From the NCBI GenBank assembly GCA_002269645.1, contig NIVC01000025.1, positions 1-64,000 of the forward strand: a stretch of DNA of 64,000 bases, given 5' to 3'. Of the stretch, positions 721-44,112 are shown piece by piece. The stretch is from Macrostomum lignano. Its lineage: Eukaryota. The notes under the pieces were generated by a model. It made no database searches and was not told where the DNA came from. It saw only the letters and a program-made list of their open reading frames with translations. Each line of letters begins with the position of its first letter. Positions within the stretch are counted from its first letter, which is position 1. The position numbers and the translations under genes were made by a program.

Positions 721-1090
721 GGTCTTGGCTGATAGAAATCGGTACCTTCTCAAATCTAAACTTCTTGCTGGGCGGACGTGGCAGGTTAAGCTGGGCCCTA
801 GAGAGGGAAGGGGCTGAGTTCGGCCGGCATTCAGCCTCCCACGGGTTTCCGAACCCGGGGGCTCTTCAGGCGTGGGAAGGAGGAGGCATCAGAGCTTGCG
901 CGCGCAGCTGGGCGAGCCTCCTCCTGCTCTCCCTGGTAGCCTCGTCTAACATATCTCTGCCCCATCCTCTAAATCTTGCCTATGGCGATCAGGGTGGCGC
1001 ACGAAGCTGCAATTGCTGCTGCTGCACACCCGGCCGGCGGCGTGGGCGCCTCCTGAATTGCAAGCGGCGGGGCTGGATTGGCGCCAGTTC

Positions 1091-2378: not shown

Positions 2379-4596
2379 AACTCACACACTTGCGGCGTCG
2401 AAGAAAACAAATTGAAAAACGGGTGGCTCCACATAATTCCATTTAGGCAGTCCTAACGGCTTCACTCGGCAAAGCACACTGACTCAAACTGCGGCTACCA
2501 CTACCAGTTGTCTATGGCACATCCTGACAGGGAAAAATTGGCTATTCAGAGAGACTTGACCTTCATTTTGCGGCCATGCTAGGGAACCCAATGCCGACCG
2601 TAAACGGACTTACGGCACCTGTACAAATTCTCCCCTAGGGTTGCGCGCCGGACCCCATTTCCTTAAGAAAGCTACTACGAAGAAGCGTTGGCGCCTGGAC
2701 CCAAAAACCCAAGTGGCGGGAGCAATCCCCATGGAGGTCCTCCCACTTTACTGCCCTTGCACAGCCGGAAAACCGTCGGAGTCCAGTGGGGCTTCCACCT
2801 CAGGACTACCAATCTTGTACACGCAGCTTCACAAAAGGCGGGAATCCAGCTCCCCTACGTCTAGCAGAATCCACAAAAACCAAGACCTCCCCTTCTGTTC
2901 AGAGCGAAGGCGCGCAGCGGGAGTCCAGACTAAACTGTCCCCGAAGTTTTCAGGTTAGGCGGATTACAAGCCTGAAACTCTCGCCCGCTTTCCTAGGATA
3001 AACAGACCTAAGTGAGTATCTTCCTGAAATGCTTGCCCCTCCGATACTCCACCTTTGCTGCAGCTCGAAATAGCATACTTGGGACCTTTATCTGATGGCG
3101 GAGAAAGTCCTACAGTTGTCAGCCTCTCCACTTTACTGTACTTGAACGCCCGGTTCTACCAGGAGACAGCGGTACCTCCATCTAGGTTATTCCAAGTTGC
3201 CAGAGACGTCAACCCGTCTTATTGACCTTGCGGGGCACTGGGGTGGCACTCTATGTACCGGGGCTTTACATTAGGGGACTGCATGCAACCCTGCGTCTAA
3301 GCGCTTAGTGGGCTGCAGTGGCCAGAGGGGAAAAGAGTTGCGCAATAGCGCCTTCCTGGGCCAGGCTGACAAGTCGGGCAGGAGCGCCGTTCTACCGGGT
3401 CGGGCTGATTGGCACACCCACCTCCCCTATCAGACTGACAGCAGGGGGGGGAGGAATTACTAAAGGAGGAGAATGCAGCAGGAAACATTACGAGATCACT
3501 GGGGGCCACCAGACTTCCAGTACACCATTCCAATACTCACTGAACTCCACTATCAATAGGATACTATGGGATCTACTATTTCCAGCCACTGCACCAGCCC
3601 AAATGCAACCAAAGCAGTTACTACCGGGTCTGCAATACAGTGGGGAGAGTCAGCAGACACGTTGGGATCGAATCCCAGCCATGAAGGCACCAGGGGTTAC
3701 CGCAGAATTCAGGTCCGGGCTGATCGCAGGTATTCCATAGGAGGTGACACTTTTTTTAGCCCGAGATTTTTGAGTCACACTGATACCCTACAGAGATACA
3801 ATCACACCGCTATTCCCATTCCTGCGAGACTTTGGTATCCCCCAATGTTTCCAAGGCCATGACTACTGCTTCCCTTACTATGCATATATAGCGAGTTCCC
3901 CATAGCCCTTGATAGCTGTTCATTCTAATGGACAAACAAAACACGCTCCGGTCTCTACGCATTTCTAGGATTAACTGAGCGATCAGGGAGAGCGACCGTT
4001 ACACTCCCCCGAGTAAAAGAAAGAGGTAGGACAAAGGAAAGAAATGCTTCGCTTCCAGCTTCCCTGTGCTTGCGTGATGAGGCTTCCGTACCTGGCTGGC
4101 TGTCCACCTCAACACTCACACAGTTCTGCTGTAGGCTAGGCGAGAGAAAGAAAGGGAGGGGAAATAAAGCATATTACCATGAAATAGAAAGTGAGTCCGG
4201 AAAATTCACTTTCGCAGTTCTTCACACACTCCGTTACCAGGTAGCTATTCTGATTGTAATCAAATCCGCTCGTCTACCACTTCACACTTCCTAGCGCTGA
4301 AACTGATCGGCTAAATTAATTTTAAATTGAATCAGGGGCTTTTGGCGAATGAATGAATTTGGAAATTTCGAATGAATTGAACGAATTCGCAGCCCGAAAA
4401 ATTTGAAAAGTTACATTAATATTTTTGGATTTTGTTGCCTCACGCCATGGGAGAAGAGAATGACGATTGGCGATTTTTACGATTGGTAGATTTAGACATG
4501 GCACTCTTTGCGCTTCGGCCACCATTCTGAGGGATGCCACAGGTGCGCTTGTCACATCTAAACCACCAGTCCGAAACTCAGCGCTGTTTGCACCAG

Positions 4597-6818: not shown

Positions 6819-7515
6819 TCATACAGGACAACTCTCTTTTGAAGGATTGTACATGTACAGGACAACTCTCTTTTGAAGGGTTTTACATGTACAGGACAAC
6901 TCTCTTTTGAAAGGTTTTACATGTACAGGACAACTCTCTTTTGAAGGGTTTTACATGTACAGGACAACTCTCTTTTGAAGGATTGTACATGTACAGGACA
7001 ACTCTCTTTTGAAGGATTGTACATGTACATCACAACTCGGTTTTGAAGGGTTGTACATGTACAGGACAACTCTCTTTTGAAGGATTGTACATGTACAGGA
7101 CAACTCTCTTTTGAAGGGTCGTACATGTACATCACAACTCGGTTTTGAAGGGTTGTACATGTACAGGACAACTCTCTTTTGAAGGGTTTTAAATGTACAG
7201 GACAACTCTCTTTTGAAGGGTTGTACATGTACAGGACAACTCTCTTTTGAAGGGTTGTACATGTACAGGACAATCCTCTTTAAAGGGCTGTACATGTACA
7301 GAACAACTCTCTTTTGAAGGGTCGTACATGTACAGGACAACTCATTTTTGAATGATCGTACATGTACAGGACAATCCTTTGAAGGGCTGTACATGTACAG
7401 GACAACTCGGTTTTGAAGGGTTGTGCCAGTATATGTACAGGACAACTCTTTTTTTAAAGGGCTGTACGCGTACAGGACAATTGGTTGAAGGGTTGTACAT
7501 GTACAGGACAATTCT
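6819..7515. repeat. 34-bp tandem repeat (CATGTACAGGACAACTCTCTTTTGAAGGGTTGTA) in B4GALT7 intron 1
   Basis: About 20 copies with 34-nt period, decaying at the right end. Confidence 0.95.
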
Positions 7516-7614
7516 TTGCGGGGATGTACTCGTACTGAGCGAGTATACAAGGGGATTATTTTTAGTGGGTATAATTAACCAATTAGCATCAGCACCACAT
7601 TCGCAAGCACCAAC

Positions 7615-8058
7615 CTGAGGATGCAGGTAAGGCGGTGTGACATGCAGCACATCATATCCGCCTTTGTCCGGCGGAAACGGATAGTCAATAGAGGAATGAT
7701 TGGGCAACAGATCCACATCGTGCAGAGCCATATAGTCGCAGTCTGAGCAGCCGTGCTCAAGGAAGCCAACGTTGAGCAGTGCGCCGCGATTGAATCTAAA
7801 CGAGTCGCACTGGTCCACCACAATCACGTGATGCGGCCGGTTCCGGTCGTTTAAAAATTTGTTCATATAAGGCAGGAAAGCAGACAGTTCGCTAAATCTG
7901 TCTCTGAATGGCACTATGATGAGTAGCCGGTGATCTATCATCTGCTTTGACGCCAACCTGTCTTGAACAGACTGGCGCAGTGCAATGCACAACAGAAACA
8001 ATAATACTACTAGAAGCAGCAAATGACAGGATCTCTGTCCCTTTAATTTGAATTGCAT
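7615..8058 (-). CDS. B4GALT7: Xylosylprotein beta-1,4-galactosyltransferase 7 (galactosyltransferase I), coding exon 1
   Basis: Type II TM anchor, then HRLLIIVPFRDRFSEL, FNRGALLNVGF, YMALHDVDLLP (DxD), HVTPPYLHPQ matching B4GALT7; donor CAG|GTTGGT at 7615/7614. Confidence 0.92.
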
Positions 8059-14200: not shown

Positions 14201-17200
14201 ACGCCATACGCCACCGCTGAAGCTCTCCTGGCTCTGACTGATCTGCTGGAGAAACAGCAGCGACTGCTAGACAACCTGGTGCAGCGTGACCAGCAGCAGA
14301 AGATGAGTCCGCCTTTGAAGGCCATGATCTGCTATGGCTGCGGTCAGCCTGGTCATCGCAATGCACAGTGCCTGCTACGCCAGAACCAGGGAAACGGCGA
14401 GACGGAGAGCGCCGACGGCAACGCCCTCTGCAGAGCCCAAGCCCCGGCTACTTGGCAGACTCCGAACGCTCACCAGAAGAAGAGGATGTCGGCTGCACAG
14501 GCGCCAATGCCCAGCCCGACAATCGCTCATCAGTAAGTGAGGCTGAGTGCGGAGGTTTCGTGGACACCTCCGATGATCAAAAAATCCATGCGTGTGAGGC
14601 TGATCCGTACATCACCGGCCGATTGGCGGGCCGAGAAGTCCCTTTCCTACTAGACAGCGGCAGTCGGAAAAACTTTCTTGGAGCGTCGACCTGGGCCAAT
14701 GTTAGGCGTCGGATGCCTCGTTGTATTATATCGCATGCTATCCCAGATTGCGTGACCATGTACGACGGTACGCAGCTACCTCTTGCGTGTAAGGTGGTCA
14801 TCCCGGTGGAGTTTGGTGATGTCGTCGCGGACACCGAATTCCTGGTCACGGTCACCGTTTGTGAAAATTTGCTTGGTATTAATTTCATGCGTGAGCACTG
14901 CCAGAACTTGGACTTCGCTAAAGGAATGCTAAAGTTCTGCTATAGTGCTATAGCAGGAATGCTATAGTGCCCAAGAAGGACGGCAACATCAGGCTGGTGC
15001 ATGACTTCAGAGCTCTCAACGACAAGTGCGTGTACCACCCGTACCTGCTGCCGCACATTCAAGAGACTTGCGAAGCTGCGTGGTGCCCAGTGGTACTCTA
15101 GCTTGGATCTCGCTCAAGGATTCTGGCAGATCCCGCTGCGCGACTGCGATCAACACCTGACGGCATTCTCTGTGATTGACCGCGGACAATTCTGTTTCAA
15201 TGTTCTACCGATGGGTCTCCACGATAGTCCAGGCAGCTTTCAGCATTGCATCAATAAGCTCCTGGACGGCCTGACGCCAAAGACTGCGCTTGGCTACATG
15301 GACGACATCGTGGTGCACTCAGTGACCTTCGAGGAGCAGCTGGACAACCTGCGGACTGTACTCCAGCGGATTATCGCAGCCAACCTCAAGGTCAAGCCGA
15401 AAAAGTGCCATTTGTTCCTCAAGGAGCTGCATTATCTAGGTCACGTCGTGACTCCTGACGGCCTGAAGACCTGTGAGGACAAGATTGCGCAGATCCGTGA
15501 TTGGCCCGTGCCACAGTCCGTTACTCAACTGAGACAATTCCTAGGCCTTGCCAATTACCACCACAAGTTTGTCAACGGCTACGCTGGATTTGCTGCGCAG
15601 CTGCATGCCCTGACTCGAAAGGACATCGGCAGCCTGCGGCAGCATTGGACTGATGAGCACCAGGTAGCGTTTGACACGTTGAAGAAGAAGTTGTGTTCGA
15701 CTGAAGTTCTCGCTCTGCCTGAGTTTAACTCAGATCCTGATGTGAAGTTTGTCCTAGACACTGATGCCTCAGACATTCGCATAGGCGCTTGTCTTGGACA
15801 ACGGCAATCTGACGGCGTCGAGCGCCCAGTTGTATTCTTTAGCCGGAAACTTCGTGATCCTGAGAAGCGCTACACGGTCACGAAAAAAGAGCTGCTTGCA
15901 ATCGTGGACGCGATGCGACATTTCCGTCATTATTTAATCGACAAGAAGTTTGAAGTTCGTTCTGACCATCGGGCCTTGCTGTGGCTGCTGAACCAGACGC
16001 AGGTCACAGGCATCTTGGGCCGTTGGATTGAGCGATTAAGCGAGTCCCGCTTCCAGCTCCACCATCGCAAAGGCCAGGACCACGCCAACGCTGACGCCCT
16101 GTCAAGACGCCCGGAGACACCACCGGTTGACTTCGAACATGGCCGACTGCTGGAGCACCCCGGTTCTGCAGCCCGACACGGTGATGACACCAGCCGGGAG
16201 CCGCACTTGGACACCACACGTGAGGCCACTGCGAGAGCAGCCCGCACGAAGAAGGTCCACACTCGCAACAAGGAGGCCGAAACTGCCCTGGCCAAAGACC
16301 TGGAGGCCACTGCTCCAGCAGCCCTTCAGCACGATGACCATCGCTGCAGTCAACGCCTGGAGACCAGCCTGGACACCAACCCGGAGGCCACTGATTCCTC
16401 AGCCCTCCGCAGGGATACCCATGCTGCCTGTCGTTACTTGGAGATTCGCCCGGACAAGACCTCGGAGGCCACTGCTGATGTAGACCTCCTTGATGATATC
16501 CAAGACTGGATCTCGGAACCTGGAGACGCCCATGGACTACGACTCAGAGGCCACTGAACAAGCAGCCCTTTTGATGACGGCCCACAACGCAGATCCAGAG
16601 CAGCAATGTAAGTTCAACCCCCGGAGTTTTGCGCTGAGATTTCTCGCCGTGTTGACAGAGGCCAGACTCTCGCGATGGCTGCAAGGTCAACGCTCTGTCC
16701 CCTGAGCCGACAGACAGCTGCTCATCGCCTGTGCGGAAAGTCGAGTCCCCCTTTGCGACACCGCCCAGTGCTGGAGAAGACTCACCCAATGACGACGATG
16801 ATCGAGCCGACGGCTACGGCTGCCTGCGACGAGGCGTGCTTCACGCGTTGCGTCTCGCCCTACAGCCAAGAGTCGCCTGGGCTGTGCAGTGGAGGCAAGT
16901 GCACTGCTCCAGCTGCGGAAATTCCTGTCAAGAGAGCGACGATAAGAACTTCGAAACGAGATCAGCGATCGTACGCCGATGTTGTGAGACAAAGTCCCTC
17001 GGAGCGACCTAATCCTGACGCCGACAAGACGGAGTCGCGTGATCAACTGTGAGTCAAAGCGGAGTCTGCGGGAGTCATGAACCCTCAGCCATGCCGCGCC
17101 GTGCTCACCGATTTTATGAGGTTGCCGATGACGCGGCAACAGTTTGTTGACGCGCAGCGCACCGACCGAGCTATCAGCTACGTGCTCAACTTGGTCGAGA

Positions 17201-20200
17201 ACAAAGCCCCGAAGCCTGAGTTCGACGCCCGGTTGCGACTAACAAAGGAGCAGCGGAATCTGCTCGGATATTATGATAATCTGCTAGAGGACAACGGCCT
17301 GCTGTTGATCGACCTGACCGACGGCTAGCAGTCCCCGAAGGTTGTCCTGTCTAAGTCTCTTGATGCCCAGGTGCTCCAGGAGCTCCACAGTTCGCCACTG
17401 TGTGGACACCTCGGCCAGACGAAGACGTTGAAGCGGCTACGTAAACGATTCTGGAGGCCCGGATTAGCCCGTGTCACCAAGAACTTTATCAGTAAGTGCC
17501 GCGCCTGTCTTGAAAGTAAATCTCGAAGAAGAGACCCAGTACCTGTACAGAGCTTCCCTGTGTGCGAAGTTCTGGGAAGAGTACATTGCGACGTAGTAGG
17601 CCCTATTGCCCAGAAGAGCAAGAGTGGGAACTGCTACATCTTGACGCTATGCGACGCGACGTCGAAGTACCCGTTCGCCTATCCTATGAGGAACCAGAAA
17701 GCCAAGACGGTCATCAAGATCCTGCAGGAGCGCTTGATCCCTGACTTTTGTGTACCATGCTGGATACACACTGATCAAGGAACCAATTTCACGGGCTCAG
17801 CTTTCAAGAAGTTCTGCGACCTGTTTGGCATCCGGCATACGATGACAACACCGTACAATCCAGCTTCTAATGGGCAAGTCGAGAACCTCAACAAGCAGCT
17901 GAAGAGTGTCCTCACCTGCCTCCTCGAGCGCAACCATAACGACTGGGACACCTTTCTCCCAGCCTGTCTGATGGCTCTTCGCTCTAGTGTACACCCGGTG
18001 ACAGGTTTCACGCCTCACTACCTGGTGTTTGGTCGAGACTTCCGACTTCCAATCGACCACGCGATCAAGAAGCTGCCGGTGTATGCCGACCTGCCGGACT
18101 ATGTCAAGGACTTCCAGCGTCGTCTAGACGAAGCGACTGAGCTAGCCAAAGAACGCCTGCACCTGCACCAGCAGCTGCGCGACGAGCACTACTCGAACCT
18201 GCCCGCCGCCAAGAAGCTCAAACCTGGTGACCTGGTCTTCCTCAATAACCTGGTGCTCGAACCGGACGAAGCGGCGAAGTTTCATCGACCTCGCAAAGCG
18301 CTGTACGAGGTAGTCGAACCCAAGGGCGAGGTCGTCTACAAGATTCGCCGTAGAGTGCCAAACCCGCGGGCCAGGCGCGACGAGCTAGTAGTCCATCGCC
18401 GGAATCTGCTACTCGTACCTGATGCCGACTACCAGCTGACTTCGGATCCAGAAGTCGACAAGGCCAAGAAGCGCCGCAGGTCGACTGATGCCCCGGACGG
18501 TGCAGGACCTGCGACCCTGACACCGATCCCGAAGGACGATCCCGATGACGATGATGATGACGATGACGCATGGCCGGCCTTCCGGTGGCACTTCCGGCCG
18601 TTGGCGATCCCGGTCAGGAGGTGGACTGGTCACGACACCAGCGAACCAGGCAAGTGCATTTCGGCGTGAGCCACTGCTGTATGGTGATCGCCATGATGGT
18701 GTGCCTGGTTTGAATGCGTCTGAACCTGTTGCTTCTTTTTCACCTGTCCATGCGTCCCCACTTCCCGAACCTTTTTCTGCGGCCCAGTCTCCTGCACCAC
18801 CTTCTTGCACCACTCCGGTGGAAGCGTCTCCCATACCAGTAGTGGTAGCTAGGCCAGTTAGGGATCGGAGGCCGCCGGAAAGGCTTCTGATTAGCAATCC
18901 TAGGGCCAAAACGTACGTTAGTCGCACCGCCCGCATGCGTGTGCACAAATTAAAACCTTTCAGCGCAGAAATGCACAAACGCCCATACCAAGCGAGCTCG
19001 AGCTCTTCATCCGGCGCTGAGCAAGGTCGGCCCAGCCGTAGCAGGCGCCGGCCCAGTACGCCAGCTTCGCCGGAGACTATGGGAATCCCGCGCCACCCGC
19101 TAGCGACCATTAACCGGCGACTCCTGGACGAGGGCGACAATTTGGCGAGGTCGACGCGCCAGTCTTATAGGCGCCCACGCCGCCGCACTCCGTCACCCGA
19201 GCCCCAGAGTCGAAATGGACGGCCAGTCCGGACATCTGCGCCCAGGCGAAGCCCGTCGCCCGCTCGAGAGGACCGTGTGCCTTAACGCCCTGCTCGTGGT
19301 CGCCGACACCAGGCCGAGGTCATCGCGACTTTACAGGCGACTCGCCGCCACCGGAGGCGGAAGTGCGGCGACTCACGGCTGAACGGCTCGCGGCTGCCCT
19401 GGCATACGCTCAACTCGAGCAGCAAGTAATGCGGGGCTTGGCGGGCGTCCGCCTCCACATCCGGAATTCTCTTGCAGGTAACGTCGGGACTCGGCTGGTT
19501 GCCAGCAGACGAGCCGGGTCGGAGACCCATGGCGATCCCGAAGGAGCAGGATGACACGGAGTAGACCCCGAAGGCTCCAGGCATCCCGAAGCGGCCCCGT
19601 CCCCGATGTCCTGGGCTGACGAGACCCAGGGAGCCGCTGCGTGCTCCGAGGACATTTGGACCGACCTGGCCGTCTCTCTGAGCCGCGCCCTACCAAGAGC
19701 CCCGCCTCCAACGCCAGAGTGCTCAGCGGAGACTGTCAACGCCGGCACTCAAACGGAAACGCCACTCCCGGAGGCTCGAGCCACTGTCATCTTCGCCGGT
19801 GCCAACCTGCTATGTGCCGTGCTCACAAAGGCGGCCCGGAATGGCGAGGAGACCGTCGACCTCCGCGGTCCGATCTGGGCAGAGCTTTGCCGGACTATGG
19901 CCGATGAGCGGCGCCAGCTGTTCAAGGAAGCGATCGGCCTGGCTGGCCCCGAGCTGAAGCGACCGACCTGGCTGTATGCTCTCCATCTGGCGGCCGTCCG
20001 CGTTGCCCGGCTTCTGGGCGGTGGCGAAGAGGACCTGCCGGTGATCCTGCCGGCCCCGCGTATGAGCTACTTTGATTAACTGATGAGCCTGCGCAAATGT
20101 ACGCCCTTGATGATGAAGAAGTTGTACCCCCTTCGCGCACTCCCCAGGAGCCTTGCGTGTGAACCCCGAGTCATGACTCCCTCCTGCTCCCTATTGCCGC

Positions 20201-24931: not shown

Positions 24932-25700
24932 GTGCAAGTGCACTCATGGCCCAGAACACCCTTCTACCGCCAAAGTTCAGTGGGAACAGACGGCACTGAC
25001 GTGAGAAAGTGGCTGCGCATCTTTGAGGAATTCGCCAACGATGCGAAATGGGACGACGCAACCTCAGCGTCGAAGGTGAAGCTACTGCTCACGGGAGAAG
25101 CCCAACTTGTCGTCTGGACCTGGCCGAGACAAGACAAAAGAGTTTTAAAAGTATAAAGGAGGACCTCACAAAGTTTTTTGGAGGCGAAGCCGACAGCTTT
25201 AAGGCCATGAGCGACTTCTACGCGAGGAAACGTGGAGATGCCGAGACACTGCGTGAGCTCTGCTTCAACCTGAAGCTGCTACACCAGAAAGCCAGACCAG
25301 AGGACTCAATTGCTCAACAAGACCGCGAGATGTGCGCTTCAAGCTTCTGCAGCTGCTCAAGGCCGACATTCTCGACAACCTGCTTAAGGCAGAGGACGCA
25401 GAGACCTGCAGCCTGGAGACTATGCTGCAGCGGGCGGCCCGGCTGGAGGAGCTGGCTGGGCGACAGTCGGTGGTGGCAGTCGGAGCCGTCAGCGCTACAT
25501 CATCAGCAGAACCAAGCGAGGACCGCCTAGACCGACTGGAGAAACGCATGGAGGAGCTCATCGCGAGGGTCAGCGTACAGTCGGGTACCGACACTCGGCG
25601 TCGCTGTCAACAGCGAGGAGGCGGCTGCTTTAACTGCGGTCAGCTCGGACACGTGCAGCGCAATGTCAGCAGCGAGAGAAACAGCAGGGTCCGATCATCT
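24932..25700 (+). pseudogene. gag with zinc knuckle, frameshifted
   Basis: WLRIFEEFAN...LLLTGEA; CFNCGQLGHVQRN. Confidence 0.8.
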
Positions 25701-28700
25701 GCCACAAGTGCTCTGGGCGGGGGCACAAGGCTTCTGTCTGCCCATCGAAGGCTCTGGGAAACTTTTAAGGGTTGGTGCAACGGGTGCGGGACCCACACAA
25801 ACCCCAAGGAGCAATCCCGTGCTTTATGCTACTTTTATACCTGGAGAGGCAAACGGCAAGCCGTGCCGCTGGCTGCTGGACACCGGAGCGCAGACCTCGC
25901 TGATCAGCGACGTTGCTTTGAGAGAGCTGGACGGTCGCTGCGAGCTGAAGCCGGCAGATGTCAGGCCTGTGTCCGTGGACGGCTCCGTTCTCGAGCTGTT
26001 AGGAAGCGTGAGCATTACGGTGCGACTTAGTCATCAGCTGCGCAGACAAATGGACGTGCTGGTGGTCAGAGGGATTCGCCCAGACTTCATCCTGGGGATG
26101 GATTTCGTGAGCAAGGCGGCCAGATCGCAGTTCAGCATTGACCAGGGTGCCAAGACAGTCGCATTTGATGGTGAGGCGGTTCCGTTCAGTAACTGCGATT
26201 CCAAGCAAGATGGCCCACTGTCTTGTTGCTTGGTACCCACAGTGATCATCGCCAGAGTTCAGGGCGCCGTCGTGGTACCGCCAAGGTCAGTTAAAGTGGT
26301 GGACGTGACGACCGAGACCAAGCAGGCACAGGGCATCTTCGAGCCATCACAGGAATTCATCGACAGAATCGGAGTGCTGCCCGGCCGCGTGTTCGCGGTG
26401 TCTTCAGAGAGCGGTGAGATCCCAGTTCAGGTGTGCAACCTCAGCTGCAGCCCGGTCACGTTGTTCTCCAACCAGAGCATCGGCACCTTCGAGAGCGCAG
26501 TGGTTATCGATGAGGACGAGGACGTGCACGAGTGGCGAGGCCCCGCAGACCAGCTCAACATCAATCCGGAGCTGCCGGAGGAGGACAGCAAGCGTCTAGC
26601 AATGCTGCTGAGGGCATTTGCCGACGTGGTCTCAGTCCATGAATTCGACGTTGGTACGAGCAGCGCAGCGCAGCACAAGATTGAGCTGGACGACGGCGCA
26701 CGCCCAATTCGCCAACGGCCTCGGCGGGTGCCTCACGCTTTCAGGAGGCAAGTGGACGAGAAGCTGGAGCAGATGCGACAACATGGCGTCATCGAGCCCT
26801 CCACCAGCCCGTGGGCAAGCAACCTGATAATCGTCAGAAAGAAGAATAATGACATCCGAGTCTGTGTCGACTGGCGGGCGCTGAACAACCTTACAGTAAA
26901 GGACGCCCACCCGCCGCCGCATTTGCACCAAGCGATCGACTCCTTGGCTGGCTGCTCATGGTTCTCTACGATCGACATGCGCCAAGGCTTCCTTCAGGTG
27001 GAGGTCAGAGAGAAGGATCGGCCGTTGACAGCGTTCTACACTCCGAGCGGCCTGATGCGATTCTGCAAAATGGGATTCGGCATGTGCAACGCGCCTGCGA
27101 CGTACCAGCGAATGATGGAGCTCATCATGACCGGCCTGAGCTGGGAGGAGGTCATCGCGTACATTGATGACCTGATCATCTTCAACAGGGACTTTGAGAA
27201 CCACGTTCAGTCACTGTCCAAGGTGCTGCATCGACTGCGGTCTGCCAAGCTGAAGCTGAACAACCCAGGCAAGAGCTTCTTCGCCTACCGGAGCGTCACG
27301 TACCTGGGTCACCAAGTCTCTGAGAGCGGCATCGCACCTGCCGCGGAGAAGGTCGAGGCGATCAGGCGGATGCCGGAGCCGCAGTCCGAGGAGGATGTTC
27401 GACGCATCATCGGCATGCTCAGCTTCTACCGCAGGTTCGTGCCCAACTTCTCTGAAATTGTCAAGCCGCTACATCACCTGGCTCAGAAAGGCGCGGGCGG
27501 CGGCTTCGTGTGGATGTCAGAGCATGCTGCGGCGCTGAACAAGTTGAAGGACGCGCTGACCCAGGCCCCGGTGCTCCAACTGCCCGACTTCAGCCGGCCT
27601 ATCGTCATCAGCTGTGACAGCAGTGCTGTGGCCTTGGGTGCGGTGCTCAGCCAGGAGCGCGACGGCCAGGAGCTGCCAGTGGCCTACGCTTCCCGGACGC
27701 TGAGCAAGGCAGAGTGCAACTACAGCACCACGGACCGGGAGCAGCTCGTGATTGTTTGGAGCCTCAAGCAGTTCCGCATGTACCTGAGCAACAGCTGTAA
27801 GATCCAAGTGTTCACCGACCACAAGCCGATCACTGGGCTGCTCAACGCGAAGGAGCCAACCGGTCGGCTGGCACGTTGGCTGCAGCTCATTCAGGAGTTC
27901 CCCCTGGAGATCCTGTACCGGCCAAGCCGTGGTCTGTCATGCAGCTCGACATCAAGGGCCCACTGCCAGCCACCGAGTCAGGCAAACGCTACATCCTCTG
28001 CTTTGTCGACACATTTTCAAAGTGGGTGGAGGCGGCGGCCCTCAGCCAGATCGACGCCAAGACGGCAGCCGAGGCTCTGGTGACCTGCGTGGTGCTGCGG
28101 CACGGAGTTCCCGAGGTCGTGCACTCGGACCAAGGTCGCCAGTTTGAGGCCGAAGTTTTCAAGCAGACCTGCGCACTGCTCGGAGCAGAAAAATCGAGGA
28201 CCTCACTGTTTCACCCCAGCGGCAACGGGAACGTCGAGAGGTTCAATAGGACGCTGGGCAACATGCTCTCGGCATTCTGCTCGGAGGACCAGGCCAGCTG
28301 GGACGCCCTACAGCTCCACGGGCGAGTCGCCGTTCAAAGTGCTCCGCGGTATCGAGCCCAGACTGCCGGTCGACTTGGCACTCGGTGGGCAGCGCGACCA
28401 GCCGCAGGACTGCGCGGACCTGCAGGCGAGAATCAGGCGCGGCTTTCAGGTTGTGCGGGCGCACCTGCACACGGCCCAGAAATCGCAGCACGAGTTCTAC
28501 AACCTAGGGGCAGAGACTACCGACTTCAAGACCGGTGAACGAGTGATGCTGACGCACCATACCATGAAGCGCGGCCAGTGCAAGTCGCTGTCGAACCGGT
28601 GGTCCGGCCCGTTCATCGTCCTTAAGAAGGTCAGCCCTGTGAACTACCGGCTGCAGGCTGTGAACGGCAGGCGCCGCTTGCTGGTCCACCACGACCTCTT

Positions 28701-28917
28701 GAAGCGCTTTATCGACCAACTAAATCTGAGCGACAGGCCGCCAGCCAAGCCGGCCACCGAGGACGACTGTCAAAGCATCGAGGACTCCGCGGGCCAGCTG
28801 GCCGGCCCGGACGCCTGGGAGCAGCTGCGCGACCCGTACGCGGCTGAACCCGGCAACGCGGTGCGCCGGTCAGGCAGGCAGCGACGGCGGCCGGACTTTT
28901 ACACGGCGACCTGTTGA
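25663..28917 (+). pseudogene. pol (PR-RT-RH-IN) with deletions and frameshifts
   Basis: LLDTGAQTSLI; YIDD; CDSSAVALGAVLSQ; QLDIKGP/HSDQG/GNVERFNRT; HHCC finger missing. Confidence 0.93.
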
Positions 28918-30971: not shown

Positions 30972-34801
<3,830 letters not shown>

Positions 34802-36515: not shown

Positions 36516-36626
36516 TCAGTCAGTCAATCAGTCAGTCAGTCAGTCAGTCAGTCAGTCAGTCAGTCAGTCAGTCAGTCGTCAGTCAGTCAGTCAGTCAGTC
36601 AGTCAGTCAGTCAGTCAGTCAGTCAG
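36516..36626. repeat. (TCAG)n microsatellite
   Basis: Direct inspection. Confidence 0.97.
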
Positions 36627-37484
36627 TGTGTCTGCATGTAGAGGACGTCCGATCTCGCGTTCTGATCGCAGTCGATAACAGCAGGTAACATCAGGTATAT
36701 TGAGCTAACTGCCGTCAGCCTCTACATGTACAGGATGTCCTCTGCCCACCTTAGACGGACCTTGTTTTTCTGGGTTGCACCTTTGCTAGTGTATATCTGT
36801 TATTGAGATTATAGATTCTCAGCAATCCCTCCGCTTAATACCTCTTAGTATATGTACATGCATATGCTTCTTAGAGTTACATGTAGTTTGAATATGCATA
36901 CACAAGCTGAGATGCTGAGATGTCAAGGCTAATGAAGGGAATAGCTGAAATAAATGAAGGGGGTTGCTGAGATGCCTAAAGGCCAAACGTCAAAGTGAGA
37001 TTTGGATTCAGCCAAAGCTCGAAGGGGAGGCTGATATCAAAGGCGACTAAAGTAACAAATACATCTACTTAAGTGGCTGATATCTTAGGCTGGATGGGTG
37101 GCTTTCATAGCCGATGATTTTTGCTATAAAAACATCATTTTCCTTAAGAAACTAACGATAGTAACTCTAGGCTGGATAGGTGGCTTTCATAGCCGATGTA
37201 CGCTCGTACGTATATTAAAGTTAATTCAAAAAATGTTTCCATTTTACTCCAAGTCTGACTGTTATTATTCCGACTACGATTTTACACGATTTAAACAAAA
37301 GCTACATTGAATAATATTTTAGGCAGTATAGTTTGAACAGTAACTCACTATTAATATCATGAACCGGTCAATCAAAAATATTTCTGTTTAAAAAGTTAGC
37401 TTTAAATTTAACCAGCTACTGCATAAGCAGTAGAAAACGCATATTTACAAAAATATGTGAGCATATTTCTTGAGTAGAAGGACG

Positions 37485-38932
37485 TTAACTGGAGCACGAC
37501 CTGGTTAATTTGGATGCTCTGTCTTCCAGCAGCCTCACTCTGGCTTCCTCTGCCGCGGAAATTTCTGAACCAAAAAAGCTTCTTATTCTTTCAGCGCAGA
37601 TTTTCAGGCGGGCGCCGTCTGTGCAAAAATTGCAAAAAGCAAACAGCTCCTCATAGTCGGCATCCACATCAAGGTCGGCGGCCCAGCTGGCCATCTCTGA
37701 CTCTCTATCAACGCTCTCTGCTCGCAAATGCAGGCTTAAACAGCGCCAGAAAGTGTAAAAGTTGACGTAAGTGTGAGAAGCATTGCCTTGCTGGCCGAGG
37801 TGACAAATACAGCAGCTGACGACTGTCTCTGGCAGAAAGTCCACCCCGATACTTCCATGGCTGTAAGTAAAGCAGAACTTCCAGGCCCAATCGCTTTCGC
37901 GAAGTATTTTATAATCGTGCTCTTCAAAGTCGTAGCCTTCGAAGTTGGCGTAATAACCGGACTCATTAAGTGTCTGAGCAGGGTCCCACAGTCGCTTTGT
38001 CTGATGACCCGCCAGCCGCTGTAGCGCCTGACAGGCGGACAACTGGTCGCCGAGTTTCAGATGCGCCAAGGCCTCCAGAACCTGGCGGGCGCACTTCATA
38101 CAGGCCAAGTTATCGGCACTTCTCAGCTTCTCAAAGAAGTCGCTGGCCAGTTCAGGCTGCAGGTGTTGCAGTTCGCACAGTCGCCAGTAGACGAAGCCGT
38201 AGATGTCTGCAAAGTAGCTGAGCTGCAATGTCTCCGGCCGATACGAGGGAATTCCCAACGGCAGCAGAGTGAATGGATAGAAGTAGAAACTCGTGTCCTG
38301 TCCAAGCGGCCTCACGTGACCAGCCAGGTGATGCTCAAATTCGGCCATGTTTAGCAGAACCCGCTTGATCAAAGTGAAAACAGTCAGTTTTGTTTCCGGC
38401 GATCCTACGATGGCGCTTTTGAAGAACAATGGCGCTCCTTCCAAGAAAAAGTGCGGCATGCAGACCTCGGGCTTGGGTTCATTGGCAGTGAGTTGCAGCA
38501 TGAGCAGCAGGGACTCTCGAAACAGCGCAATTAGTCGTTCAGGCTTCCACTCATCCGGGTAATCCTGCTTCTTCTCGAGCATGAAAAACAGCAAAGTCTT
38601 GGCGTGGTAGGTCTTCAGACCGGGCGCGTTCCAGGTTTTCGGGATGAGTCGCTTGAACAGGAACTTCAACAGGATAAACAGCTGGCCTTGCACAGTTGTC
38701 AGGCTGCGGAGGGCTTTCCTTTCCTGGAAGCTGAAGCTCACTCGAAGCTCGGCCGTTTTATCCGGCCTAGTGGCTCTGACCAGGTGCACGTTGCCCTCGC
38801 AATTTACGCTATCATCGCCTAGCAGAATGTTGATCCGGTGAGTATAGAATGAGCTGCAGCACATGTAGGCATAGCAGGTGTCCTGAGCTGGCCGGATTCC
38901 GCAGGGCGGAGCAGCGACTGCGGGCTGGGTGC
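37485..38932 (-). CDS. Mab-21/cGAS-like nucleotidyltransferase (cGLR), last exon: third acidic residue, Mab-21 C-lobe, helical extension
   Basis: QDTCYAYMC, LRVSFSFQE, LFILLKFLFK, LKTYHAKTLLFFMLE, W, PHFF-LF are Mab-21 family hallmarks; acceptor TTGCAG at 38933. Confidence 0.88.
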
Positions 38933-39194
38933 CTGCAATGCAGCGGATGGCGTTTGATTAGCGGATTCAGTAACGATGCATGTGATGGATTTTATTTCTC
39001 CGACACTTCATATATCCGATACTTCATATCTCCGACACGTCATATCTTCGTTAGGGTTAGGCTTACGGTTAAGCTTGTCGGAGGAATAAAGTTTCGAAAA
39101 TATAAATAGGTGCTTTCGGAGATATGAAAGCGTCCCGTTTAAAATAGACTGCAAATACCCCATTGATTCAGGTGACCCCCGGACTTCTACAAAC

Positions 39195-39553
39195 CTGCTT
39201 GAACATCGATCAGACAGTGGCCTTCGACAACTTTTAATAGCAAGCCTCGTCCTCGTCTATCGGAGCACTGGCAGCCGAAGAACAGGTGAAACTTTTCCCC
39301 CTCCTGGATGACGGTCCAATCGATGTCGGAGTCCCTGGCGGTTCTTCCGGTCACCTGCACCAGGCTGTTGCCCCAGCCGTCGGAGAAGCTGCCAGTCATT
39401 TCCCGCATCTCTTCATAATAGGCCTTAACAGCGAGCTTCTGCAAGAACTCGGCCATCTGGCACTGGAACTGAGCTCTCTCCCGGGTGAACCCCGCCTCCA
39501 GGAGCAGTTGGTGCAGGCGCAGGCTCTTCTGGACGTCATCGGCTGGTGACTCA
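39195..39553 (-). CDS. cGLR catalytic exon (GS...DxD)
   Basis: MTGSFSDGWG...DSDIDWTVI; acceptor TCTCAG (39554); donor CAG|GTTTGT (39194), phase-compatible with the next exon. Confidence 0.85.
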
Positions 39554-39639
39554 CTGAGAATTAGGAAGTAATAGTTGTGTCGTGACTATTTAAAGAAACA
39601 AATATATGCTCGCTAGTAGTATATATACTCAGCAACATT

Positions 39640-39925
39640 GAAAAGTCGCTACTCTGTGCCAGTGAGCAATTTCTCTTGGACTATTCTGAAATAAAAGATA
39701 CGAGAAAACCGATCGGGGTAGCTTCAATCCGTCCAACCCTCGCACACCGCTCCCATCACTTCATTCCTCAACTCAAGTCTGCCGCGGCGTAGCTGAGTTG
39801 CGTTACTCGCAAAGATTGAGAGACTTTTTTCCTGAACTCTTAAAAGTGACGATCACAGACGGAATCTTCTGTGATGGCGACTTTTCGATGTTGCGGAGTG
39901 ATATTTTGAACTCCAGTCCAGCCTA
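39640..39925 (+). repeat. Dispersed repeat, copy A (copy B, AT-eroded, at about 49350-49660)
   Basis: Shared blocks GCAATTTCT.TTGGACTATT.TGAAATAAAAGATA, TCAACTCAAGTCT, CAAAGATTGA.AGACTTT. Confidence 0.75.
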
Positions 39926-40154
39926 ATAGCTATATAAATATAACTCTTTACACATCGTTGAAATTTCCAAACAATGCTAGTTTCAGACTTCCTTCAGGCC
40001 CTCCGAGGGGCCCAGTGTGCATACAGTGTATATTGAACACTTACAAAGCGTGGATATCAGTAAGCATGGCCTTGAAGTCCGCAAAAGTGTGAGTATTGTC
40101 GACCGTATATTGGATTTTTCTGAAAATAATTGCAGGCCAAGTTAGAGTTTTAAT

Positions 40155-42203
40155 TTATAAAACCCTTGTACGAGAAAAAGAGGGTGTAAGGCACAACCTT
40201 GACGAGTCTTCTTCCTGATCAGTCTGAGTTGAAAATCTCAGCAGCAGGTCGACAATCACCTGATGCCCAGCGCTCCGAGCAATGTCCAGCGCCGATTGAC
40301 TGGCACTTTTTTGTAGGTCTAGAACTGTCTCCTCGAGATCCGCGCCATTCTCCAGCAGGGCCTTCACGATGTCAGCGTAGCCTCTGCTGGCGGCACGCAT
40401 CAGCAACGTCCAGCCGTCGGTTTCTACCGCTCGGCAGCTCAGGTTAACGAAATTCGCCACAAGCGACAGGCTCAGAGCGATGAAGCCGCCTGCTATGGCT
40501 GCATGGGCGATGCGCTGCGTCTGTTCTGGCGTCAAGTAGCTCAGTATTAACCGGAGCGAGCTGCACGCGTTGTTGGCCGCCTCGCCGTCCAGACAGCGTA
40601 CCAGCCCGTCAGGACTTTGCTTGATTAGCTCTGCAATGTTGAGTCCATTTTCTAGCAGAACAGATACGACTAGCACAGAATTATTTCCAAGAGCGCGCAG
40701 GAGGATCCACTGAGAGTCCGTGATATTCAAATCGGCAGGACGGAATCCCAAACTAATCAAAAGTTGTACAACACGGGATTGTCCGTATCTGGCAGCGTCT
40801 ATCAGACTGTGCCAGATGAGTTGTTTGCGGTCTGCTTCGGATTTAGAGTAAAAATCGAGCAGTTGCTTTGCAATACAGACAGGCGATTCTGTCAGATTAA
40901 CGGCAGGGTTGGTGCCAAGCTGTTGATCATGAACTTCCTCCAACAGAACAGCGGCAACTTGAAAATCGAGCGTTCTGAATGCGCTTTGAACGATCGCTGC
41001 TCGATCTGGAGGATCTAGATCATCTGGGCGGAAAATGCCTAAATTCAGCAGCAGCCGAACAGCCCTCGGATCGCTGGATGTTGCCGCATGGCACAGTGCG
41101 CGTCCTATCAGTTGCTTTCGTTCGTCCACGGTCAGTGAGCAGTGATCAAATCGTTGGCAAAGTTGATGAAAAATTCCTGTAGCGGTTGGATCTTTTGAAG
41201 AAGCCAGCTGGTACAGCACGTGACTTGTTGACTCGTCATTAAAAAAATAATCAACAACCGTAGGAAATTGCAGCAGTTCCCGCAACACAGAATAATTGCG
41301 CGCAGAAGTAGCTGCGTTGGCGCACAGATTCAGCAAGCAGACGTTGCGCTCGTTACCGGAAATGTCTCTGATGGCCGACAGCAGTTTGTTAACAATAGGC
41401 CAAGATGAGCACTCGGCTGCCACGATGACTGCTTGCTTATTGGAACCAGTTTCTACCGGATCTGGATTTGCACCGGCAGTCAAAAGCAGGTCGATAATTT
41501 GTTCTGAGTCGGATTTAGCCGCTAATTGAATCGGTCTGCCCTTCAATCTGGGAAGGCTCGGATCAGCTCCGTGTCCCAGAAGCAGCTCCACAGCTGCGGT
41601 CTGTCCTGAACCAGCAGCTGAGCACAAAGCGTTCGTGAGCGACTGGACGTCTAGAAAGCTCGGGTTAATGTCCGGATTGCAGACTAGCAAACGTACAATG
41701 TCCTCCTGTGTGGAAGCGCCGACTGTACGGTTGAGCGCGCAGTATCTTTCGTCTACTCGATTGTCCCCGGTGGCCCCCGAGCGAAACAGCAGTTCAACAA
41801 TCTGTTTATGACCGAAGCTCGCGGCATAGTAGAGCGGTCGGCAGCCGAACCAGCGCTGCTCCGGCATGTCCGGATCTGCGCCAGCCTTTAGTAGCTCGGC
41901 TACTATGCTCAAATAGCCTCGGCGGGCCGCGAAGCTCAGCGGTGTAGCGTGGATGCGTGGATCCTCGTAGTTGGGATCGGCCGACCAGCGTACGAGAAGG
42001 TGCCGCACCAGAGGTGCCTGGCCGCGAAAGCTGGCCTTTATCAGAGCCTTCTGAATGAGATCCGGCAGTCGAACGTTGGAGTCAATGCTGCCTGCTTGCA
42101 GCAGCAGCTGATCAATCCGTTCTATGCTACCAGCTGCGACTGCACGGTAGATTTCAGTTGCATCTGCTGTGGAAGCTAAAGTTTGCGTTGTCAATATGTA
42201 CAT
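40155..42203 (-). CDS. Ankyrin-repeat protein region, probably the N-terminal part of an ANK-cGLR
   Basis: Multiple ANK repeats (TPLSFAARRGYLSIVAELLKAGAD, PLYYAASFGHKQIVELLF, TLLMRAASRGYADIVKALLENGAD); probable true start is a mini-exon ATGG|GTGAGT at 42660-42657; phase-2 donor AG|GTTGTG at 40198. Confidence 0.85.
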   Translation of the reverse strand: MYILTTQTLASTADATEIYRAVAAGSIERIDQLLLQAGSIDSNVRLPDLIQKALIKASFRGQAPLVRHLLVRWSADPNYEDPRIHATPLSFAARRGYLSIVAELLKAGADPDMPEQRWFGCRPLYYAASFGHKQIVELLFRSGATGDNRVDERYCALNRTVGASTQEDIVRLLVCNPDINPSFLDVQSLTNALCSAAGSGQTAAVELLLGHGADPSLPRLKGRPIQLAAKSDSEQIIDLLLTAGANPDPVETGSNKQAVIVAAECSSWPIVNKLLSAIRDISGNERNVCLLNLCANAATSARNYSVLRELLQFPTVVDYFFNDESTSHVLYQLASSKDPTATGIFHQLCQRFDHCSLTVDERKQLIGRALCHAATSSDPRAVRLLLNLGIFRPDDLDPPDRAAIVQSAFRTLDFQVAAVLLEEVHDQQLGTNPAVNLTESPVCIAKQLLDFYSKSEADRKQLIWHSLIDAARYGQSRVVQLLISLGFRPADLNITDSQWILLRALGNNSVLVVSVLLENGLNIAELIKQSPDGLVRCLDGEAANNACSSLRLILSYLTPEQTQRIAHAAIAGGFIALSLSLVANFVNLSCRAVETDGWTLLMRAASRGYADIVKALLENGADLEETVLDLQKSASQSALDIARSAGHQVIVDLLLRFSTQTDQEEDSSRLCLTPSFSRTRVL

Positions 42204-43058
42204 GTAGACACGCCCGCACTTAATTATACGATTTTAAGAGCTTAATACTTATTCGCAAATGTGTTCACTTTCCCGCCATATGGATGCCTTTTGAAATAAA
42301 AAGCTTCTGGTCTAAAACCTACATGTTATGGTAAGAGCGCATGTAGTCAGTGATGGACGAAACTTTGAATACTGATGGAAAGTATGATTTCATCTGAAAC
42401 TCGACTGCTGTGATGTGATACGGAGAGAGTGAGTGATGAGCAGAGAGTGAGTGATGCGGAGAGTGAGTGATGAGCAGAGAGTGAGTGATTAGCAGTGAGT
42501 GAATAATGAGCGGTGAGTGAGTGATGTAGAGTGTGTGATGCGGAGAGAGTGAGTGATGAGTGACAAGCTATCAGGAGTAATTTTATTTTTAAAAAATTCG
42601 CAATAACATGCTTAGAACGGAAGCACAAAAAATTTTCAATTAAACAATGCACTCACCCATTTGCTGTGATACTTCAGTATGCGGCACTATTAATTAGCAG
42701 CTTTAACCAATATCAAATCAAAATAAGCACAATTTTAAGCGCTGTTTAAGTCAGTTTATGACTGAACAAGAAGAATTAGAAAAAGAAGCAGCCTCATGCC
42801 TATCATAGAAAAAAAAACAATTTTCTTTCAACTAGGAACCATACAGTACTCTAGTGTACATAGGAAATTTGATTGCAGCCAAAAAGCGCGGAAAGGCCTT
42901 TTTGCTTCAGTTTGAATTGTACAGCAATTCAAAGCTATTTTTAGAACAACCGATGAACGATATTAATTGTACAGCTTCCTTTTTCTCGTACATGGAAAGA
43001 TGGAGAGAAAGTACTTGGCACAGTAAGAGACAAACAAAAAGAAATCCTTTAGGTAGCG

Positions 43059-44112
43059 GCTACTCACTAATGACCAGGTGATAATCAGGGAGCGGTTACT
43101 CACTAATGACCAGGTGATAATCAGGGAGCGGCTACTCACTAATGACCAGGTGATAATCAGGGAGCGGCTACTCACTAATGACCAGGTGATAATCAGGGAG
43201 CGGCTACTCACTAATGACCAGGTGATAATCAGGGAGCGGCTACTCACTAATGACCAGGTGATAATCAGGGAGCGGCTACTCACTAATGACCAGGTGATAA
43301 TCAGGGAGCGGCTACTCACTAATGACCAGGTGATAATCAGGGAGCGGTTACTCACTAATGACCAGGTGATAATCAGGGAGCGGTTACTCACTAATGACCA
43401 GGTGATAATTAGGTAGCGGTTACTCACTAATGACCAGGTGATAATTAGGTAGCGGTTACTCACTAATGACCAGGTGATAATCAGGGAGCGGTTACTCACT
43501 AATGACCAGGTGATAATTAGGTAGCGGTTACTCACTAATGACCAGGTGATAATCAGGGAGCGGTTACTCACTAATGACCAGGTGATAATTAGGTAGCGGT
43601 TACTCACTAATGACCAGGTGATAATTAGGTAGCGGTTACTCACTAATGACCAGGTGATAATTAGGTAGCGGTTACTCACTAATGACCAGGTGATAATTAG
43701 GTAGCGGTTACTCACTAATGACCAGGTGATAATTAGGTAGCGGTTACTCACTAATGACCAGGTGATAATTAGGTAGCGGTTACTCACTAATGACCAGGTG
43801 ATAATCAGGGAGCGGTTACTCACTAATGACCAGGTGATAATTAGGTAGCGGTTACTCACTAATGACCAGGTGATAATCAGGGAGCGGTTACTCACTAATG
43901 ACCAGGTGATAATTAGGTAGCGGTTACTCACTAATGACCAGGTGATAATTAGGTAGCGGTTACTCACTAATGACCAGGTGATAATTAGGTAGCGGTTACT
44001 CACTAATGACCAGGTGATAATCAGGGAGCGGTTACTCACTAATGACCAGGTAATAATTAGGGAGCGGTTACTCACTAATGACCAGGTGATAATCAGGGAG
44101 CGGTTACTCATT
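43059..44112. repeat. 36-bp tandem repeat (CTCACTAATGACCAGGTGATAATCAGGGAGCGGTTA)
   Basis: About 29 near-identical copies, two variants. Confidence 0.97.

Follow-up and report, generated by a model that had tools for sequence, protein, structure and literature searches.

Animal cGAS-like receptors (cGLRs) in which ankyrin repeats precede the enzyme form a named architecture class, ANK-cGLR, and Macrostomum lignano PAA accessions with Ank_2 are already present in the domain table of the study that defined it (Li et al. 2023). The same study cloned five M. lignano paralogues of the gene described here (PAA68676.1 [P0008], PAA93208.1, PAA86972.1, PAA45980.1 and PAA57558.1) and included them, with the ankyrin arrays removed from the constructs, in a screen of 140 enzymes with poly I:C and ISD45 dsDNA as ligands. 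None of the five is among the 15 'active cGLR' labels in its Table S3, and the family is thus without demonstrated activity. In vitro, many cGLRs seem to be inactive, for which the probable reason is that their activating ligand is not known; dsDNA and dsRNA are the ligands known to activate cGLRs (Li et al. 2023). Among flatworms, neither cGAS nor STING was found in a planarian, and further species are listed as having none.

The window analyzed here, 64,000 nucleotides of M. lignano contig NIVC01000025.1, contains on its minus strand a real four-exon gene that combines a long ankyrin-repeat array with a cGAS-like enzyme (Table 1). Its segments 42660-42657, 42175-40198, 39553-39195 and 38932-37485 join in frame via GT..AG introns to encode 1262 aa. 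The coordinates and splice contexts given in an earlier sequence-only reading of this DNA were all present, and the junctions are spanned by the UniProt model A0A1I8GDN2 (P0001). That reading had allowed two acceptors for intron 1, at 42166 or 42175. Both are indeed in frame, with acag/CAGATG at 42166 giving 3780 nt as it had calculated (1259 aa plus stop codon) and tttag/CTTCC at 42175 giving 3789 nt (1262 aa), but only the 42175 version agrees with A0A1I8GDN2. The N-terminus of this model, MAS..., requires ATGG to be joined to CTTCC at 42175. The exon 2 reading frame additionally holds an in-frame ATG at 42203, an alternative start that would bypass exon 1 and yield 1271 aa, and a GAGT-rich tandem repeat of 18/34 bp lies at 42423-42563 inside intron 1.

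Table 1. Features of the M. lignano ANK-cGLR gene, in positions of the window (a slash marks a splice site)
Feature	Position	Strand	Content or evidence
Exon 1, coding part	42657..42660	-	ATG and base 1 of codon 2, then donor (ATGG/gtgagt); sequence
Intron 1	42176..42656	-	481 nt, gt..ag
Exon 2, ankyrin-repeat array, residues 2-661	40198..42175	-	Ank_2/Ank matches; ORF 40155-42203; donor TCAAG/gttgtg at 40198
Intron 2, separating ankyrin array from NTase	39554..40197	-	644 nt, gt..ag; junction EEDSS/SESPADD in P0001
Exon 3, N-terminal spine helices and first half of NTase N-lobe, residues 661-781	39195..39553	-	carries GS and DID; acceptor ctcag/TGAGTC at 39553, donor AGCAG/gtttgt at 39195
G715-S716	39388-39393	-	exon 3
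D737-I738-D739	39319-39327	-	exon 3
Intron 3	38933..39194	-	262 nt, gt..ag; position kept in paralogue PAA68676.1
Exon 4, remaining N-lobe, Mab-21 C-lobe, conserved tail and stop	37485..38932	-	sequence; acceptor tgcag/GCACCC at 38932
Third catalytic Asp, D798	38880-38882	-	exon 4
Mab-21_C (HhH/H2TH-like) segment, residues 877-950	38424..38645	-	PF20266 score; family profile vs PDB
Family-specific C-terminal domain, residues ~956-1262	37488..38408	-	conserved among paralogues; helical with small beta-sheet
Stop TAA	37487-37485	-	end of exon 4

A0A1I8GDN2 is identical to the product at 953 of 954 residues over the model's entire length (100% for the exon 2 product, residues 1-655) and crosses all three junctions, starting with MASTADATEIY and containing ...EEDSS/SESPADD... 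and ...DVQAG/TQPAV.... It therefore represents the same gene or an allele. The model is annotated by its ankyrin repeats alone ("ANK_REP_REGION domain-containing protein") and ends, at ...FFKSA, ∼308 aa before the stop found in the window. No near-identical NCBI model was present among the matches, the closest being the UniProt-only models P0001 and P0002, and the full 1262-aa product was absent from a collection of 15 billion proteins. The paralogue PAA68676.1 (NIVC01001377.1) matches the gene in exon order and in the protein position of the intron at ...AG/[ST]QPA.... The splice junctions thus appear to be supported by both the public gene model and conservation.

These observations make it highly improbable that the locus comprises two genes, one for an ankyrin-only protein (ORF 42203-40155, 682 aa) and one for an NTase starting in exon 3. 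With intron 2 retained, the exon 2 reading frame would continue to the stop at 40155, and exon 3 does offer an in-frame ATG at 39456. However, A0A1I8GDN2 joins both parts, most of the M. lignano paralogue models returned carry ankyrin and NTase segments together, in PAA68676.1 with the shared exon order, and a start at M39456 would cost the fold its first spine helix. Since the NTase N-lobe is divided between exons 3 and 4, the cGAS-type fold needs both of them.

The N-terminal 660 aa of the product consist of ankyrin repeats, matching Pfam Ank_2 with an E value of 8.7e-61 (nine stretches) and Ank with 5.9e-40; Ank_3, Ank_4 and Ank_5 likewise match, and every ankyrin model scored above its cut-off. 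As judged by structure prediction, the C-terminal 602 aa adopt the cGAS/Mab21 fold. The AlphaFold2 model of this part (pLDDT 81.4, pTM 0.84) was compared with the PDB by Foldseek, a check that the sequence-only reading had proposed, and the best 50 matches were all cGAS, MB21D2, MAB21L1 or Sp-cGLR1, with a best E value of 4.7e-7, target-normalized TM-scores of 0.46-0.58 and 344-427 aligned columns. The Pfam search proposed alongside it was successful for the ankyrin repeats and less so for the enzyme. PF20266 (Mab-21_C) scored 23.9 bits in the product against a cut-off of 24.1, although 13 of the 15 family members examined do match it (E ≤0.01; best, 1.4e-7), and the N-lobe model PF03281 (Mab-21) gave no match at E ≤1 in the product and none at E ≤0.01 in the 15 family members. 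A profile of the family matches PDB chains of cGAS and Sp-cGLR1 at 1.5e-7 over the Mab-21_C segment; the N-lobe is recognizable by profile-profile and fold comparison only.

The active site predicted from sequence motifs could be placed on this fold. The motifs named in the sequence-only reading, including the acidic triad, were all found (TGS at residue 714, DSDID at 735, QDTC at 797, SFSFQE at 846, LLKF at 868, YHAKT at 889 and PHFF at 940), and in the AlphaFold2 model one strand (residues 50-54 in the numbering of the C-terminal part) precedes GS while another (77-91) bears the two aspartates of DID (D77 and D79). Alignment to published cGLRs with hhalign (probability 99%, E value 4e-18), when extended, placed GS on GS, D-I-D on E-f-D and D798 on the conserved vD, so that the triad occupies the catalytic columns of the reference cGLRs. 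The definition of a cGLR by Li et al. (2023) includes G[S/G] and [E/D]h[E/D]-X50-90-[E/D] together with predicted structural homology to cGAS; the product shows both the sequence pattern, with a spacing of 58 between DxD and the third Asp, and the homology. Together with the Pfam ankyrin matches and fold matches restricted to cGAS/Mab21, this alignment of the catalytic residues bears out the claim of an ankyrin-cGLR fusion. The caution that such fusions might already be known was equally well placed: the fusion type and the flatworm family have been catalogued since 2023, several members having been cloned at that time, and the gene is a further member, with neither its architecture nor its family being new.

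G715, S716, D737 and D739 are unchanged in all 13 paralogues compared (28-49% identity), D798 is kept in 12 of the 13, and of 84 family N-lobes most show an SD[IMLV]D motif; a minority of paralogues are without DxD or the third Asp. This pattern bears on whether the protein could be a catalytically silent scaffold of the Mab21 type, like MAB21L1/2, for which Li et al. (2023) predict no working active site, its ankyrin array and tail binding proteins with no nucleotide signal being produced. Consistent with such a scaffold are the losses in that minority, the presence of MAB21L1 among the fold matches and the position of the five screened paralogues outside the labelled active set. Nevertheless, we consider it unlikely, since retention of GS, DID and D798 across paralogues this divergent is hard to explain without catalysis, a motif scan of MAB21L2 for GS-[D/E]h[D/E] gave no match, unlike that of the product, and in vitro inactivity is common among cGLRs.

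The spacer between GS and DxD, which had been described as long at about 20 aa, is indeed 20 aa; the nine reference cGLRs with a clean motif-scan reading have 10-12 aa there. This length is compatible with activity, because the active Sp-cGLR2 of Stylophora pistillata, which makes 2'3'-cGAMP and carries a GSxFEG motif, has 18 aa in the same loop. Sp-cGLR2 is predicted to have a negatively charged ligand-binding surface (Li et al. 2023), to which the non-basic character of our product may be compared, although its screen construct has no ankyrin array and its sequence similarity to the product is distant. Human and mouse cGAS (PDB 4k9b, 6cta and others), the best Foldseek matches, share the bilobal NTase/Mab21 fold, and their C-lobes align with that of the product at the sequence level. 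At 13-17% identity, however, the product differs from them by its longer activation loop, its extra ankyrin and tail domains and the absence of both marks of cGAS proper: a motif scan found no zinc thumb, H(X5)CC(X6)C, and there is no basic ligand surface (pI >8.5).

The core has a pI of 7.5, which falls to 6.0 once the tail is included and to 5.7 for the entire protein, well under the >8.5 of nucleic-acid-sensing cGLRs (Li et al. 2023). Since the enzyme part is not basic, its activating switch would probably not be a double-stranded nucleic acid. The near-neutral, not strongly acidic core and the known dsDNA and dsRNA ligands of other cGLRs leave some room for a sensor of nucleic acids in the manner of cGAS or Drosophila cGLR1, with the ankyrin array acting as an adaptor or localization module only. 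With the low pI, the missing zinc thumb and paralogues among which poly I:C and ISD45 dsDNA produced no active label, such a sensor appears improbable.

By sequence comparison, the product belongs to a large paralogue family specific to M. lignano. All five cloned paralogues share with it GSxxEGWGNSL...SDID, RVSFSxxE, YHAKT, PHFF and the conserved C-terminal tail, and its cGLR NTase, which contains G[S/G] and the triad [E/D]h[E/D]...[E/D], is preceded by ankyrin repeats as is characteristic of the ANK-cGLR class. PAA68676.1 is 43% identical over NTase and tail, and all matches other than P0001 and P0002, the screened paralogues included, are at most 44% identical over the full length of NTase plus tail. 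The tail had been anticipated as a helical region of about 250 aa; its helices are present, but it is nearer 300 aa in length (residues ∼956-1262) and also contains a small beta-sheet (AlphaFold2 pLDDT, 78). It is conserved in paralogues at 21-30% identity, and its fold gave nothing better than an E value of 0.17 against the PDB. A search of 1.84 billion cluster representatives (50% identity) with a tail profile found 83 relatives at E ≤0.001, of which 51 reached E ≤1e-30. The 10 relatives sampled were all from M. lignano, suggesting that the domain is confined to this flatworm family.

The ankyrin arrays are less alike. Compared with paralogues, the array of the product gave either no match or 23-29% identity across 100-240 aa, whereas NTase plus tail reached 40-53% in the same comparison, and the arrays of the cloned paralogues are likewise unrelated to that of the product. 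Beyond the generic repeat, the arrays are thus essentially unrelated between paralogues, with enzyme and tail being conserved. For this reason the array is likely the variable module, which may bind a protein or other ligand or may keep the enzyme off until a ligand is bound; this sensor or autoinhibitor role is suggested by the divergence pattern and by analogy. Overall, we favor as reasonably probable that the gene encodes a single 1262-aa cytosolic protein with an ankyrin array, a cGLR NTase with a complete active site and a ∼300-aa tail, a putative ligand-switched second-messenger enzyme. Once switched on, the NTase would synthesize a nucleotide second messenger that is probably a cyclic dinucleotide.

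The window supplies the complete product, whereas the public model of this gene is ∼308 aa short; the species is a transgenic laboratory model. Most cGLRs are without a known ligand. One conserved enzyme combined with many unrelated ankyrin arrays makes this family a natural place to seek protein or other non-nucleic-acid ligands. More tentatively, and with the odds rather against it, the M. lignano ANK-cGLRs might constitute a lineage-specific, NLR-like repertoire in which interchangeable ankyrin sensors for non-nucleic-acid ligands sit on a conserved cGLR and tail and signal possibly via a non-STING receptor. If true, signaling of this kind would exist in a phylum otherwise reported to be without cGAS and STING.

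The four exons of the minus-strand ANK-cGLR gene (see table) join into a reading frame of 3789 nt and 1262 codons, interrupted by introns of 481, 644 and 262 nt, all three of which start with GT and end with AG. The splice junctions proposed by the sequence-only reading could all be found in the minus-strand sequence, and its in-frame joining of the separate ORFs was borne out by A0A1I8GDN2 (P0001), an independent M. lignano gene model of 954 aa that passes through the same junctions. This model is identical to the window product at 953 of 954 positions, reads through both EEDSS/SESPADD and DVQAG/TQPAV (the slash marking the junction), and has an N-terminus, MASTADATEIY, that requires ATGG to be spliced to CTTCC at 42175. 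The M. lignano paralogue PAA68676.1 (contig NIVC01001377.1) shows the same order of ankyrin exon, N-lobe exon and last exon, with its last intron at the same protein position (...VGAG/SQPAE...). Moreover, the N-lobe of the nucleotidyltransferase (NTase) is split over exons 3 and 4, so that neither exon alone would make a complete domain. Given the start, junctions and identity of A0A1I8GDN2, the layout of PAA68676.1 and the split N-lobe, the exon chain goes beyond arithmetical coincidence, and we consider the predicted junctions to be supported by a gene model and by conservation.

Two variants of this structure were rejected. The acceptor at 42166, which the earlier reading had offered for intron 1, does keep the frame, yet the public model lends it no support. 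An extra mini-exon in intron 2 (∼40130-40044, between cag and gtaagt) was considered because PAA68676.1 has a mini-exon there, but was left out of the gene model because it is absent from A0A1I8GDN2. At the other end, A0A1I8GDN2 stops at ...FFKSA, and the window ORF runs ∼308 residues further, to its TAA stop codon. Since this extension is conserved in paralogues, the window product is more complete than the public model. The exact 1262-aa product was absent from a collection of 15 billion proteins.

Features of the ANK-cGLR gene and its surroundings
Feature	Positions	Strand	Remarks
Exon 1, coding part	42660-42657	minus	ATGG, then donor
Exon 2	42175-40198	minus	ankyrin exon
Exon 3	39553-39195	minus	first part of NTase N-lobe
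Exon 4	38932-37485	minus	remainder of N-lobe onward; stop TAA 37487-37485
Ty3/gypsy-type pol ORFs	15001-19285	plus	reverse transcriptase, RNase H, integrase core/zinc-binding domains
Ty3/gypsy-type pol ORFs, second set	25663-28917	plus	reverse transcriptase, RNase H, integrase core/zinc-binding and aspartyl protease domains
590-aa ORF	33029-34801	plus	RNase H and partial reverse-transcriptase domains
36-bp minisatellite	43051-44110		29 copies, 97% match; ∼0.4 kb upstream of exon 1
(TCAG)x28 microsatellite	36516-36627		0.9 kb downstream of the stop codon
18/34-bp GAGT-rich tandem repeat	42423-42563		within intron 1
ORF with glycosyltransferase family 7 N-terminal region (beta-1,4-galactosyltransferase type)	7342-8058	minus	E 6e-16

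Within the window, the surroundings of the gene are repeat-rich. The Ty3/gypsy-type calls come from a scan of ORFs only; the 590-aa ORF is probably another retroelement fragment, and the glycosyltransferase ORF presumably represents an exon of a host gene nearby. The 36-bp minisatellite gives rise to spurious long ORFs on both strands, and a 382-aa ORF at 42963-44111 (minus strand) was discarded as a gene, being merely translated minisatellite. On NIVC01001377.1 (positions 1-2773, minus strand), a gypsy-type retrotransposon gene also adjoins the paralogue PAA68676.1, which has a 17-kb intron within its NTase N-lobe.

Profile, fold and hhalign comparisons identify residues 661 to ∼955 as a cGAS-type NTase. 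For the window protein by itself, the sequence evidence for this identity is thin. The Pfam Mab-21_C model scored 23.9 bits, just under its cut-off of 24.1, and the Pfam Mab-21 N-lobe model matched neither this protein nor members of its family, that is, the M. lignano paralogues sharing the NTase and C-terminal tail. When the 602-aa C part (residues 661-1262) was searched against the PDB as a single sequence, only weak C-lobe matches came up, with cGAS chains at E 0.03. A family profile was thus needed, and one built from 15 members retrieved cGAS and Sp-cGLR1 chains from the PDB at 1.5e-7. By hhalign, the family profile aligned with published cGLRs (14 taken from Table S3 of Li et al. 2023) at 99% probability and E 4e-18. 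The AlphaFold2 model of the C part was confident (pLDDT 81.4, pTM 0.84), and its 50 best PDB matches were exclusively cGAS, human MB21D2, MAB21L1 and coral Sp-cGLR1, with 344-427 aligned columns, a best E of 4.7e-7 and target-normalised TM-scores of 0.46-0.58, in agreement with the cGAS-type identity first assigned from sequence. We regard the observation of the ANK-cGLR as confirmed and its identity as supported; its function we infer.

In an extended hhalign alignment, G715-S716 coincide with the GS of the reference cGLRs, D737-I738-D739 with their E-f-D and RVSFSFQE with their WRxSFSxaEk, while D798 lies on the conserved vD, a column already within the local alignment. The acidic triad that had been described as intact (D737, D739 and D798) thus aligns with the catalytic columns. 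The AlphaFold2 secondary structure fits, with one strand ending just before GS, the next carrying D737 and D739 and a later one D798. The spacing from D739 to D798, 58 residues, falls in the 50-90 range by which Li et al. 2023 (PMC9980059) recognised cGLRs whose active sites are complete. None of the 13 aligned paralogues with an N-lobe (28-49% identity) departs from G, S or either DxD aspartate, and 12 of them also keep the third aspartate (D798 column). The SD[IMLV]D motif is present in most of 84 N-lobes of the wider family and lost in a few. Such conservation is to be expected if the enzymes work and a copy degenerates now and then.

The long GS-to-DxD spacer, also pointed out earlier, measures 20 aa family-wide, compared to 10-12 aa in the nine reference cGLRs in which the motif scan was unambiguous. 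This crude scan misplaced GS in two mollusc sequences and picked DLD/DVE in two from M. lignano, and the spacer figures were drawn from clear cases alone. In Sp-cGLR2 the stretch is 18 aa, compared to 20 aa in the window protein, and because Sp-cGLR2 produces 2'3'-cGAMP (Li et al. 2023, PMC9980059), a long activation loop is no argument against activity.

The C-terminal tail, initially taken for ∼250 aa of helices, is indeed mostly helical, but it spans residues ∼956-1262 and includes a three-stranded sheet, forming a folded domain in a separate AlphaFold2 model (pLDDT 78). It matched no Pfam family at E ≤1, and a Foldseek search of this model against the PDB returned nothing better than E 0.17; the TPR-like helical matches were loose, and a TPR-like fold was not adopted. 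Out of 1.84 billion cluster representatives the tail profile matched only 83, and all 10 that were looked up were M. lignano proteins.

Both this kind of receptor and its M. lignano family are already known. Among more than 3,000 animal cGLRs catalogued by Li et al. 2023 (PMC9980059), ankyrin-repeat fusion is one recurrent architecture, as the sequence-only reading had suspected, and the domain table lists Ank_2 for PAA67649, PAA58690, PAA68676, PAA86972 and PAA45980 of M. lignano. The 140-enzyme screen included five cloned M. lignano proteins (Table S3, nos. 89-93: PAA86972, PAA45980, PAA57558, PAA93208 and PAA68676); the constructs started at or just before the NTase and hence were without ankyrin arrays. 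None of the five is among the 15 labelled 'active cGLR' in Table S3, and according to the same study many cGLRs appear inactive in vitro, the probable reason being that the right ligand is missing. Beyond Mab21-like proteins, most platyhelminths lack cGLRs (Li et al. 2023, PMC9980059), and neither cGAS nor STING was found in Schmidtea (2026 planarian study). We found no statement on STING in M. lignano in the literature, and when the human STING cyclic-dinucleotide-binding domain, validated beforehand against the PDB, served as a database query, the 120 best matches listed were all vertebrate STINGs, which is not informative on flatworms.

Of 40 protein matches for the region, 37 are named Macrostomum lignano, and the window is accordingly genomic DNA from this free-living flatworm. 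Leaving aside the gene's own truncated model and a 93%-identical copy, no other model found exceeds 44% identity to the NTase and tail over their full length. That copy, the 898-aa UniProt model P0002, has an internal deletion of ∼50 aa within the ankyrin array and may represent a recent duplicate, a homeologue or a splice variant. Three further M. lignano models (P0003, P0027 and P0041) contain two NTase modules per protein, each with GS...SDID, and could be tandem cGLR fusions, as in other animals, or merged gene models. A 347-aa fragment on a 1065-bp NCBI contig (P0040, 'MAG: Kangiellaceae bacterium') is 32% identical to the family C-lobe and tail and is most likely eukaryotic contamination of a bacterial bin.

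The present analysis contributes one further member of the family, together with its full-length product. The NTase core has a pI of 7.5, core and tail together 6.0 and the whole protein 5.7, and the product has no zinc-thumb motif. Li et al. 2023 (PMC9980059) report a pI above 8.5 for cGLRs that sense dsDNA or dsRNA and consider other ligands probable for acidic ones; a nucleic-acid ligand thus appears less likely for the ANK-cGLR. Residues 1-660 are ankyrin repeats, as proposed (Pfam Ank_2, E 8.7e-61 in nine stretches; Ank, E 5.9e-40). Divergence between the domains is very uneven: against the best paralogues, NTase and tail are 40-53% identical over 300-600 residues, whereas the ankyrin array shows either no match or a resemblance no closer than that of ankyrin repeats in general (23-29% over 100-240 residues). 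By analogy with immune receptors of other kinds that contain repeats, the pairing of one conserved signalling module with many unrelated arrays suggests that the ankyrin array may be what determines specificity; it would bind a ligand or partner, or act as a lid on the enzyme.
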